Shown: positions 28,401 to 33,621 of the stretch, in pieces | Numbering within the stretch: position 1 is the first letter of the stretch | Layout of the letters: each line of letters begins with the position of its first letter | NCBI RefSeq assembly: GCF_947568905.1 | Contig: NC_079168.1 | Coordinates: 69,130,001 to 69,194,000 of the forward strand | Reading direction: 5' to 3' | DNA: 64,000 nucleotides | Source of the DNA: Ostrea edulis | Lineage: Eukaryota | The notes under the pieces: model-generated | What the model saw: the letters and a program-made list of their open reading frames with translations, nothing else | Told to the model about the DNA's origin: nothing | The model's database searches: none | Program-made: the position numbers and the translations under genes

Positions 28401-31400
28401 TCTGGTTTTTATATAACCATAGTAAATCTCCAAATAGAAATATTCAAGTGTCTGCAATCTGAATAGACTCACTGATGTCGTTAACGGTTTTCAATTCCTT
28501 AAATAAAAGATCTATAAATAAAAAATATCATTATTTACGCCTTTGTCCCCAGTTTGCTTTACAATTAACATCATTTTTCTTTTCTTTTTGTAGCCCATCA
28601 CTGTCACTCAGCCTGATTCTTTTTATCATATATTTGTATTAAGCAAACATTTAATTTAAAAAAAGAAGAGCAAACACATAAATCTAATGCGGCAGTTTAC
28701 AAGGATTTTTAATAACGAAATTATTTCAGGAAGAACTCAGGTACACGGTGTGTAGTTTTTGTTGAGCATTTTATGTAAAAGTCGATTTTTATACAATCAA
28801 TAACTAAGTCAAATCATTAAACATCAAATGACTAACAGTCACGTGTTTCAGTGAGGTAGTTAAAAAAAAAAGGCCCGAATGCCTATAATATTTGTAATGG
28901 AATTATAAGTATGGATATAATATACACCCAAACGTAACTGGTATATAGGTATTAATCCCCTACGTGTTTATCAGTGTTGTGTTTGTCATTTTAATTTATA
29001 AACAGAGAGTTAATTTCCTCCAAACTTGGTTCAGCTTCAAGAAATACATTAAAAGAGCGACAATAAAACTTGACGTGCGGTCTCTTTCTCCGTCGCCTTC
29101 CAATGGATGAAGTTCCGCTCCGACCGAGACTGTCCGCACTTCTAGGACTGCCAGGAAACAGAGATTGAAAATGAAATCTCGAAGCGCAAGAATCACTACA
29201 AATATTTGCCTGTTTCTGACACCCGCGGCGGAATTTGCTACACATCATGGAACGATACTTGGCCGTTGAGATGAAGAAATCCTGTCAGTTCGGCAGTGAC
29301 TCTGATTACTGAGAGCTCACGGAGGTGACTAATGACAATCCAGTACTTGTGTTAGTATTTAATCAGTCTCCGTACAAGTAAAAATCGATTCGATCCGATA
29401 AATCACCAAGGTATTTACGAGTGCGTTAGAGAGGATTTATTATGAATGATATTTATATTTTTTTTCTTCCTAGAGAATTAGAATGATACAACGGGGGGAG
29501 ATATTTCTATGGTCTTTTAAAAGACATTTCTTTATTAACGGAAGCTGTCGGTGGCTGCCAGTTTCTTCGCTTTAAGTTTCCCAGATGTTGCGGAAGCTAC
29601 GTTCAACAACTGTTGCACCGGAAACTGGAAAACATTTGTAAAACTTTGATCGGTCAAAAGTAACACGTATCGATATTGACGTAATTGTGAAACTACCGTC
29701 GAACCTTTTACTCTTTTGTCTTTCAAAGCGACAGGACAGCATTTTTCTCATAAAGTCCAGTCTATAATATTAAAAGTTAAATTAAAAGATTAATGGCATG
29801 GATACATTATTTGTTTCAGGTTTTTATGCACGGACATGTAAACTTGCAACATTTCATCAAAACAAGCAATATATATGAATAAAAATTATGATAATATTTT
29901 CTATTTTCCCCGGATGCCGCAAGATTGTGAGCAAATCTTTATATAAAAAAAACCCAATTATTCATAATAAATTAAATAATGGAATCTAATTTTGTGAATT
30001 TCCAATATATAATTCAGATTCTTGCCGCTCTGTCCGTTTGAAGCGCTAAACCTCGCATGCTTTTGTTGAATAACAAAAGTCAACAGCTGTCGTCTTTGAG
30101 TTTATTTTCACTTTTTTGTTGAGATGTTTAATGACTTTGTTTTGTACCGCTAACTGTGTCAATATTGTCGATGGATTGTAATCTTTGGTGTTCAAATCAA
30201 ACAAATTTTGTGCATTATAGCTTTGTTCGCGAACAGAAATTCCAGAAGTGTTGGGTAATGGCCACTCCGGTACCGTTCAGTCTGCCGCAATTATATGTAT
30301 ATTTTTTAAGGACCGGGTATCGCTTTATTTTGCCCGGTCCTGGTGCGAAGCAACAACAGTCTATGTACCCCAGTCTATTTTGTGGCTGGGAGAAAGTTTG
30401 AAAGAGACACGTGCTGTCGACATCTGTCGCGTGCTTCGGGATTTTGTGTCGTCTGCGAGTACGGACTAGGGTAACTGTCCTCATCGGGATAAATCTTCCT
30501 TTATCTCATATTCACTTTTTCTCTTTATGTTTTTCAAACTATCTCATGTGTAATCTCATTCCTATGAAGCTATTTCAGCGACGTGCCGTTTATAGATTCA
30601 AAAAGTTCAATATAGCTTAACCACAAAAGTAAAGAGAGCGAAATTCCATATCACCTTAATGCTGCTTAGCAGTGGTAATTCAATTTACCGAATAAAATAT
30701 TAATTGTGAATTGTACCAGGAAGATAATGACAGTATTTCACCCATTGAAAACATCGTAAATAATTAAATATCGCCGTTTGATTTTTATCAGAAATCATCA
30801 AAGATGGTAGCCGCAGCGAGTGGCTGGCAGGAAGAGGTAAATGGCTATGTACACTAGGTAGCCAACTTTATCACCCAACCTTCAGGAATCGATCCCCGGA
30901 TAGCGCCCTTTTTTTGCCACAACAGGTGGCAAAGCAAAACCTCCTCTGCAAACGGCACTAATAAATTATTGATGGACTTTGACATGTTCAATATATATAT
31001 CTTTTTAAAAGAGTAAAATGGACTAGATATCTTCATGAAACGGTTATGCAATTTAATGCCTGAATTGTTTGCATAGCACTTTCCAAGTAGAAATTTGATA
31101 TTTAATGATTTAATGATTTTTATTTTAGCAATAATTGTGAAATCCATACCATCAATTTTAATACGTTAATGGGTTATTTTAGGTATAGCATGATTTTGGA
31201 ATGTCATTGTAAATCTTTCTATAAATGTTGCTTATGTTTTTCCCCCCTAAAAACAATTATTTATAAATGTGAATTGACTATTTCCGAAATTGGAAATCCT
31301 TTCCAAGCAGTAGAGCTCCACAGAAAATTTGATCAATTTAGGGATTTCAGTATTTTAATTTCTTTCCATACAGATTAATAAAATTCTATTGTGGGAAAGT

Positions 31401-31490: not shown

Positions 31491-31528
31491 CGCGTGCGAG
31501 CATTGGTCCCACTCAGCTGTATGCAAAT
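31491..31528. promoter_or_regulatory. upstream module: class-C/Hes site + E-box + POU octamer
   Basis: CGCGTG 31491-31496, CAGCTG 31514-31519, one spacer base, ATGCAAAT 31521-31528; CSL site TGTGGGAA at 31390-31397. Confidence 0.6.
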
Positions 31529-32151
31529 TAACGCGCGCGCGATTTTGGAGCTAAACTTTATTCTGAAGAAATTGCAAGAAATTATTGATTTTCATTTTAA
31601 TTCTTTAGCACCTCTACCATTTTATATTTATAAAACAATTTCAAATGATTTTGATTCAGAATATTATATTATGCCGGTGAAATTACATGTGTATAATTCT
31701 GAGAACAAAATATCTATGATTTTTATTTTTTAACCGTAAGTGCGAATATCAATATTGCGTGTTGTTGATATCATTAAACGACATTTAGTCAATCTACTCG
31801 TTATTGATTGCCTGCACTCTGTAGAAGAATTTTGCCGAGTTCTACAAACAGAAAAAGTTTACCGTTCATAACTGTTTTGATTAAAGAGATTCCCTGTATC
31901 GATTCTTCTATAACTTCAATCATCGCCGTTTCACCTGTGCAAGTAAAACGAACACGCTAGTGAACATTCATAAGCGCCAACTAGTGCGCTATGAGAAAAA
32001 AGTGCGCACCATTAACAAAGAAAATTGGTATCAGAATTTGCGAAAAGCGATCGCTGAAAAACAAAGAGGGTACCTCTCACTGGCTGGGTTCTCTAAGGGG
32101 GCGTGTCTCGTGAATGAATATTCAGAGAAATTCTCTCAGTCTTAACGTGCC

Positions 32152-32159
32152 TATAAAAG
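32152..32159 (+). promoter_or_regulatory. TATA box of Insm
   Basis: CTATAAAAGG consensus 243 bp upstream of the ATG; GGGGCGTG GC-box-like site at ~32098. Confidence 0.65.
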
Positions 32160-32394
32160 GCGATGTGATGCTATTTCTGCGGGTTTGGTCAATAACTATA
32201 CAGGCTGAGATGAACTTTTGTGATTACCATTACTGAACGTGAGAACAAAGCAAACACGATTTAGATTTTGATACAACAAAGATAACTTGACCAAATCCCC
32301 CTTTCGATAACTGTTTTTTCGCAATTCAACCTTTGATGGTAACTTTGGAATCCAGAGAACTGAGAAGTGCTATCCTCCTTCCCAGCTTCTCGAC

Positions 32395-33621
32395 ATGCCC
32401 CGGGGATTTCTCGTTAAAAGGACGAACCACGGAGGAGCCGCGTCCTACAGGGAGAGAAGAACGTCAGAGGATGATCGCCTGGACCTGGAACCGGACATTA
32501 AAAGATTCGGATCTCCGGATTCTGGATACTGCGCCAGTCCTATCAATTTCTCAAAAGATCTAGAGAATAACAACTACGAGAAACCGCAGTGCTCTCCCCT
32601 GTCAGTGAGTACACAACAACTGTACTTTTCAAATTTTGAGCAGTTAAGTGTCAAGTCTCCAAATAACGAGAAATCGTCTCCTAAACCACTGGAACAAAGC
32701 AGCCCCAATAAGAGAAGAAACGAAATTAAGAGCAAGTCTATTAAGAAGCCAAAAGCGGCTCGGAAGATAAATTTTGATGAGGACACGACCTCTCCAGTTT
32801 CGGGCTGTATCATAAAGCATGTTTCTCCAGAGGAAGAAGGAACGGTGATTTACCATGGTGACATTGACAGCACGTACAACTTCGTAGAAGCAACCCCAGA
32901 GGCCCGTGCTGAGATCGAGAAAATCGAGAACAAAATCGGCGACTACATCTGCCAATTGTGCAAAGAATTTTACGAGGATGCGTTTCAACTGGCCCAACAT
33001 CGATGTTCCCGCATCGTCCACGTGGAGTACCGATGTCCGGAATGCGGTAAAGTTTTCAACTGTCCGGCCAACCTTGCGTCTCATAGGAGATGGCATAAAC
33101 CGCGACCTGCGGCAAACAGCAATAGGCAGAGCGCTCCCGCCAAAATTCTCCCCTCAAACCAGAATACTGAAAACAACGGGAACCAAAATGAGGCAAAAAT
33201 TGACAACGCCATGTTCTTGATCCCGACCGATCTCAGCATTTCCAACGACGAAGGGCAGTATAAGTGTGAAACATGTGGAAAGAAATTTCGCCGACAAGCT
33301 TATTTGAGAAAACATCGTCAAACCCACAGTGACTCCACGAAAATCACGCGCAACGACAATTCAACACGACAAGAAATTCTGCGTATCAGCAATTTGAACG
33401 AATTGTCAAACCGAGATTCCGTGCGTCGCGAGATGGTGTCCCCTCTGAATGCCTTTGAGAGTTTGCAGACGAGAGTTCCGGATATGTACGTGTGTAAGCA
33501 CTGCGAGAGTTCGTTCAGCAGTTCTCCAGGATTGACCCGACACATCAACAAATGCCATCCATCCGAGAATCGACAGGTCATCCTGCTTCAAATGCCCTCC
33601 ACCCTTCCCCGCCATATGTAG
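32395..33621 (+). CDS. INSM1: Insulinoma-associated protein (INSM1/IA-1; nerfin/egl-46 family), intronless, 408 aa
   Basis: N-terminal SNAG MPRGFLVKR; KKPKAARKINF..TTSPVSG block; ZF1 CQLCKE..LAQHRC; ZF2 CPECGKVFNCPANLASHRRWH; ZF3 KKFRRQAYLRKH; last finger SSPGLTRHINKCHPSENRQVILLQ. Confidence 0.98.
   Translation: MPRGFLVKRTNHGGAASYRERRTSEDDRLDLEPDIKRFGSPDSGYCASPINFSKDLENNNYEKPQCSPLSVSTQQLYFSNFEQLSVKSPNNEKSSPKPLEQSSPNKRRNEIKSKSIKKPKAARKINFDEDTTSPVSGCIIKHVSPEEEGTVIYHGDIDSTYNFVEATPEARAEIEKIENKIGDYICQLCKEFYEDAFQLAQHRCSRIVHVEYRCPECGKVFNCPANLASHRRWHKPRPAANSNRQSAPAKILPSNQNTENNGNQNEAKIDNAMFLIPTDLSISNDEGQYKCETCGKKFRRQAYLRKHRQTHSDSTKITRNDNSTRQEILRISNLNELSNRDSVRREMVSPLNAFESLQTRVPDMYVCKHCESSFSSSPGLTRHINKCHPSENRQVILLQMPSTLPRHM

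Follow-up and report, generated by a model that had tools for sequence, protein, structure and literature searches.

Does a short pair of adjoining binding sites upstream of the Insm gene of the oyster Ostrea edulis represent a regulatory element inherited from the ancestor of protostomes and deuterostomes, or is it merely a chance or convergent match to a motif known in vertebrates? The question arises from a preliminary description of a 64,000-nucleotide stretch of the oyster genome (hereafter the window; assembly GCF_947568905.1, contig NC_079168.1, positions 69,130,001 to 69,194,000), in which a composite of an Ascl1-type E-box and a Brn-type POU site was noticed about 870 bp before the ATG of Insm. 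It was argued that such a match would imply either a cis-regulatory link conserved since the bilaterian ancestor or striking convergence. Here, we first ask whether the composite is real and rare, then whether it is kept at the same gene in other animals, and finally which proteins might read it. The answer is that it is kept almost letter for letter upstream of Insm in several molluscs, a brachiopod, an acorn worm and, with one substitution, a fish, and that it probably dates to the ancestor of protostomes and deuterostomes, although binding in molluscs is inferred.

The composite and its surroundings in the oyster

The + strand of the window reads CAGCTGTATGCAAAT at 31514-31528, which is ATTTGCAT-A-CAGCTG on the - strand. 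The features of interest in and around this element, with positions in the window, are as follows.

31514-31528 (- strand): composite element, made of the E-box CAGCTG (31514-31519), a 1-bp spacer T/A (31520) and the octamer ATGCAAAT (31521-31528)
31512-31528: 17-bp run, CTCAGCTGTATGCAAAT, invariant in four oysters
31491-31496: CGCGTG, which is CACGCG on the other strand, a class-C Hes/Hairy-type hexamer 17 bp 5' of the composite
31532-31541: CG-repeat block 3 bp 3' of the octamer (CGCGCGCG is invariant in the four oysters), while other bivalves have CACGCGCC, CACACGCGC or GGCGCGTGCC in the same place
31390-31397 (+ strand): CSL/Su(H)-like TGTGGGAA, not conserved
32152-32159 (+ strand): TATAAAAG, a candidate TATA box, 624 bp downstream of the composite
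32395-33621 (+ strand): Insm coding sequence
30418-30434: block CGACATCTGTCGCGTGC, with the E-box CATCTG next to CGCGTG, conserved within oysters only
30919-30931: block ACAACAGGTGGCA, containing the E-box CAGGTG, conserved within oysters only

The identity of the gene is clear. It is an intronless ORF of 408 aa with a SNAG-type N-terminus (MPRGFLVKR) and C2H2 zinc fingers (Pfam zf-C2H2), which matches human INSM1 (chain 3zms_C) with an E-value of 2.3e-60 and is 84-97% identical to oyster proteins named insulinoma-associated protein, including 84% identity to Saccostrea 'insulinoma-associated protein 1a-like'. The composite ends 867 bp before its ATG, in agreement with the preliminary description, and is the only match in the window to both the strict and the degenerate pattern, when 0.00 and 0.01 matches, respectively, are expected from dinucleotide-preserving shuffles. 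In the whole 895-Mb genome (52 contigs), ATTTGCATNCAGCTG occurs 13 times, whereas the same pattern read backwards occurs once and simple arithmetic from base composition gives about 6. The degenerate ATTWNCATNCAGSTG occurs 410 times, but many of the listed matches are the identical ATTTACATGCAGCTG, which may be a repeat. One exact hit within 1 kb of a named gene is therefore expected about 1.5e-5 times, which means that the motif is not so frequent that such a hit would be expected. As for the 12 other exact genomic copies, several lie in repeats, none has CACGCG within 80 bp and most of their flanks hold few CpGs. They give no evidence for a wider set of target genes.

Comparison with three other oyster Insm genes, from Saccostrea echinata and two unnamed oysters, shows that all loci with enough upstream DNA carry the exact motif at the matching place. 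In a four-oyster alignment of the 3.4-kb upstream region, the 17-bp run that contains the composite is the only invariant run of 10 bp or more between 31200 and 31745, a poorly conserved stretch of about 550 bp in which only 23% of columns are invariant. From 31745 to the ATG (31745-32394), 68% of columns are invariant, and this part includes CCTATAAAAGG at about 32150-32160, a candidate TATA box, with CGTGCCTATA invariant in oysters. If this is so, the transcription start, inferred about 25-30 bp further on, would place the composite roughly 650 bp upstream of it. By contrast, the CSL site, which the preliminary description had placed 100 bp away (it is about 115 bp away), is not conserved even among oysters, since only 2 of its 8 columns are invariant, it is broken in Saccostrea and it is not alignable in the other two oysters. 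Likewise, the two further E-box blocks invariant in oysters have no consistent match outside oysters.

Distribution of the element across phyla

Far from being absent in related bivalves, the element is present upstream of Insm in every mollusc locus with enough flank. The exact 15-mer, spacer base included, lies (positions relative to the ATG) at -1643 in Pecten maximus, -3060 in Mactra, -1707 in a Mya-like clam from a marine metagenome, -2260 in Haliotis rubra, -2491 in Lingula anatina and -1819 in Saccoglossus kowalevskii. Variants with one or two changed bases are found in (i) Pinctada (E-box CAACTG, -1295), (ii) Dreissena (E-box CATCTG, -1705), (iii) spotted gar (octamer ATGCTAAT, -3022) and (iv) two unidentified lophotrochozoans, here called L030 (E-box CACCTG, -4386) and L032 (E-box CACCTG and octamer ATGTAAAT, -3112). 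Over the 15 loci, that is the oyster window and 14 others, 12 of the 15 positions are invariant and two more are at least 90% conserved, 13 loci keep ATGCAAAT, 11 have CAGCTG and two have CAGGTG (read as CACCTG on the gene strand), whereas CAACTG and CATCTG fall outside the Ascl-type consensus CAG[C/G]TG. Spacing and order are identical in all 15 loci, where the element is always upstream with the E-box distal and the octamer proximal to the gene. For 12 independent lineages, random orientation would give the same orientation throughout about 1 time in 2048.

A chance match without function, which would have been a reasonable concern for a single hit in a 64-kb window searched for many motifs, is refuted by these comparative data. 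Under uniform composition, a match with at most one mismatch on a given strand in 10 kb is expected about 4e-4 times per locus, about 310 kb of Insm loci from taxa lacking the element hold no match with two or fewer mismatches on either strand, and the 15-mer read backwards has none in the positive loci. Moreover, an unbiased strand-specific scan of all 12-letter words in +-10 kb of non-coding DNA from nine independent lineages returns only sub-words of the composite as shared by five or more lineages, so such a search would have found exactly this element and nothing else.

The element is nevertheless not universal. No copy was found, within the flanks examined, in termite (up to 5.3 kb upstream) and other insect loci, an arachnid-like locus (9.4 kb), scorpion-like, decapod-like and isopod-like loci, clitellate-like annelid loci (up to 6.8 kb), a brittle-star locus (2 kb only), four coral loci (up to 9.5 kb) or Nematostella (10 kb each side). 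These negatives are limited by flank length (2-9 kb in the ecdysozoan loci), and taxon labels for loci derived from metagenomes rest on best protein similarity only, but no ecdysozoan or cnidarian carries the element in the flanks seen, and an origin before bilaterians is therefore not supported.

Could the same optimal composite have arisen independently next to Insm in protostomes and in deuterostomes, because the same two proteins regulate the same gene? In favour of such convergence, the conserved part is only 15-20 bp and the flanks do not align between classes or phyla (beyond the 15-mer, only a loose KAG and a CG-rich block recur), so homology rests on position and orientation rather than on an alignment, and absence from several lineages shows that turnover is possible. 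The RalGAPA-like neighbour in Lingula and the CFAP61 neighbour in gar have no counterpart in the oyster window or in the other loci compared. We nevertheless consider convergence unlikely, because the spacer base is the same, the orientation is constant, the element lies on the same side of the gene (0.9-4.4 kb upstream), it is present in every slowly evolving lineage sampled on both sides of the protostome-deuterostome split, and the scarcity of exact copies in the oyster genome means that new origins are rare.

It is more doubtful still that the element serves a function other than docking transcription factors for Insm, such as part of a small RNA, a boundary element or control of a different neighbouring gene. 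Although this possibility is left some room by an unmapped transcription start and a lack of chromatin or RNA data, 15-20 bp are too few for a structured RNA, the element stays with Insm across phyla while the neighbouring genes differ, and the sequence is a textbook pair of transcription-factor sites.

A companion site and the candidate binding proteins

An unbiased scan of 6- to 8-letter words in the +-80 bp flanks of the composite found CACGCG/GCACGCGC/CACGCGCC to be the words most enriched over their null, occurring in 6 of 9 lineages against a null mean of 0.32, with no unrelated CpG-rich words beside them. Relative to the start of the composite, CACGCG lies at -23 in three of four oysters (it is lost in Saccostrea), +18 in Pinctada, +20 in Pecten, +19 in Mactra, +39 in Lingula and +51 in gar, and L030 also has one. 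Overall, it is found within 80 bp in 7 of 12 lineages, a count never reached in 5000 dinucleotide-preserving shuffles of the flanks themselves (the maximum was 5), which control for their CpG richness. Since CACGCG appears to be the class-C site of Hairy/Hes-type repressors, but varies in position and side and is missing in five lineages, we regard it as a likely but unproven part of the module.

The proteins that could read the composite are encoded in the oyster genome, which has four POU loci. One is class 3 (an intronless 425-aa open frame, with an E-value of 4.5e-91 to a class-3 POU domain against 3e-59 for class 2), one is class 2 (5e-65 to Oct-1 against 1.5e-49 for class 3), and the other two look like class 4 and class 6. 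There are at least 42 bHLH matches, and a cluster of intronless bHLH genes at 43.68-43.76 Mb of one contig (C3) includes a 207-aa ORF that matches human ASCL1 with an E-value of 3e-38, while the next best bHLH scores 1e-7.

In vertebrates, the motif type and its role at INSM1 are already known, and the literature invoked in the preliminary description holds in substance. Cooperative binding of proneural bHLH and Brn1/2 proteins to a conserved motif was described at Delta1 and other targets (Castro et al. 2006, Dev Cell 11:831), with CAGCTG as the Mash1 site adjoining an octamer-like POU site, and Insm1 among the Mash1 targets (PMC2770102; PMC2330019). The POU partner there is class 3, of which this oyster has a gene. 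More recently, POU2F1 and ASCL1 were reported to co-occupy by ChIP-seq a regulatory element about 6 kb upstream of human INSM1 that carries tandem motifs, and likewise at the DLL3 promoter and near DLL1 (bioRxiv 10.64898/2026.04.08.717069). In these human cancer cells, INSM1 is among the genes that depend strongly on POU2F1 and its expression falls on POU2F1 knockout, the association with neuroendocrine genes depends on motif orientation (which matches the constant arrangement seen here), and structure predictions place ASCL1-TCF12 and POU2F1 confidently on 5'-ATTTGCATACAGCTGT-3', but not on the swapped order or without DNA. The first 15 bases of this 16-mer are the oyster sequence, and gene, half-sites, 1-bp spacing and relative order are the same. 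What differs is the distance to the gene (-6 kb in human, -3 kb in gar, -0.87 kb in oyster, although we could not show that the gar site is the same element as the human one) and the reach of the conservation, which that study shows across 100 vertebrates only. In the literature searched, the literal 15-mer occurs in that preprint alone and no report of conservation outside vertebrates was found, which appears to be the new aspect of our findings. The same bHLH-to-Insm logic is seen in Drosophila, where the upstream neuroblast enhancer (-1529 to -160) of the Insm orthologue nerfin-1 carries three conserved CAGCTG E-boxes of the Achaete-scute type, with no adjoining octamer reported (PMC2529316), and the termite and other insect loci that we examined lack the composite. 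The oyster Delta-like genes also lack it, since none of the three best DSL-domain genes, scanned over 40 kb each, has the composite, so a whole conserved set of target genes is not shown.

Taken together, the best explanation (to which we give a probability of about 0.7) is that the composite is a transcription-factor docking site that controls Insm, inherited in place and in orientation from the common ancestor of protostomes and deuterostomes. In the most likely mechanism, which for molluscs is inferred from vertebrate work, (i) an achaete-scute-type bHLH, paired with an E-protein, binds CAGCTG, (ii) a class 2 or class 3 POU factor binds the adjoining octamer with its POU-specific half (ATGC) next to the E-box and (iii) the fixed 1-bp spacing lets the two stabilise each other on DNA and switch on Insm in committed neural or neurosecretory precursors. 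The nearby CACGCG site might let Hes-type repressors downstream of Notch veto this activation in neighbouring cells. It remains possible, though rather unlikely, that the element is homologous but read in molluscs by a different pair, with a Neurogenin/NeuroD/Atonal-class or MyoD-class bHLH or a class 4 or 6 POU factor, or by a single unknown factor that recognises the whole 15-mer. The E-box core indeed varies, with CAACTG in Pinctada, CATCTG in Dreissena (the type preferred by Neurogenin/NeuroD) and CACCTG in L030 and L032 (which Snail/Scratch-type repressors can probably bind too), and invariance of the spacer base fits a single continuous recognition surface. However, CAGCTG is the preferred site of Achaete-scute/Asense/Ascl1 (PMC2770102; PMC2529316), ATGCAAAT is the canonical class 2/3 octamer (PMC9081933), and ASCL1 and POU2F1 are the occupants of the vertebrate counterpart.

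Significance for the evolution of neural gene control

Very few non-coding elements can be traced between protostomes and deuterostomes, and those that can, such as elements near Id and SoxB2 genes, seem to have been found as long alignable blocks (tens to hundreds of bases) whose binding proteins are mostly unknown. Here, the conserved unit is a bare pair of binding sites, whose occupants have already been identified in vertebrates, next to a gene that marks neuronal and neuroendocrine precursors from flies to humans. This makes an old question directly testable, that is, whether the gene network for making neurons and secretory cells was wired the same way in the bilaterian ancestor. On a bolder reading, which we consider only slightly more likely than not, the E-box/octamer site at Insm, often with a Hes-type site beside it, may be one of the oldest cis-regulatory elements that can still be traced base by base. 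It would have fixed the link by which achaete-scute plus POU switches on Insm in the last common ancestor of protostomes and deuterostomes, after the split from cnidarians, and would then have been kept in slowly evolving lineages and lost or moved in others, marking a shared neural or neurosecretory precursor programme.

The result also shows that alignment-free scans for short composite sites at orthologous genes can find deep conservation that standard screens miss, and it would give the tandem site at human INSM1, which is of interest in small-cell lung cancer, an evolutionary depth of more than half a billion years.

Other sequences around Insm

Besides the composite element, two more blocks are invariant in the four oysters, both of which are specific to oysters.

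Window 30418-30434: CGACATCTGTCGCGTGC, a Neurogenin/NeuroD-type E-box abutting a CACGCG-type site
Window 30919-30931: ACAACAGGTGGCA, a CAGGTG E-box

Of note, L032 (the Insm locus of an unidentified lophotrochozoan) has a one-mismatch copy of the first block at -962 in the opposite orientation. In gar (locus L014), two further sequences were noticed, which may be remnants of local duplication, or chance.

L014:7807-7821: a second, degenerate copy of the composite at -2194 (CAGCTT-T-ATGCTAAT), in which the E-box is broken
L014:6086-6095: a partial word, CTGTATGCAA, at -3915

Other copies in the oyster genome

Many of the 410 genome-wide hits to the degenerate pattern are the identical ATTTACATGCAGCTG, which suggests a dispersed repeat family that carries an E-box plus an octamer-like word and inflates the degenerate count. 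As for the other exact genomic copies, one of them (L147, at C4:35764174-35764188) also matches the extended consensus G-CAGCTG-T-ATGCAAAT-GAG seen at Insm in other phyla, while L143, L146, L148 and L154 share flanking similarity and so lie in repeats. The genome also has a cluster of four intronless bHLH genes within 85 kb (C3:43678033-43763304, comprising L121, L123, L130 and one more), at least two of which have an achaete-scute-type basic region. This cluster looks like an achaete-scute complex in this oyster.

Insm and its neighbours

A protein 97% identical to the window's Insm (P0001, from a JGI metagenome contig) is labelled 'transposase-like protein' by its source, but this is almost certainly a mislabelled oyster Insm from host DNA in a metagenome. 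Two genes lie next to Insm in other lineages.

L012:18851-21428 (Lingula): a RalGAPA-like gene downstream of Insm
L014:1-5638 (gar): CFAP61 upstream of insm1

Neither gene was found in the oyster window or in the other loci that were fetched. Since these genes appear to be the two neighbours of human INSM1, Lingula may keep an ancient Insm-RalGAPA linkage.
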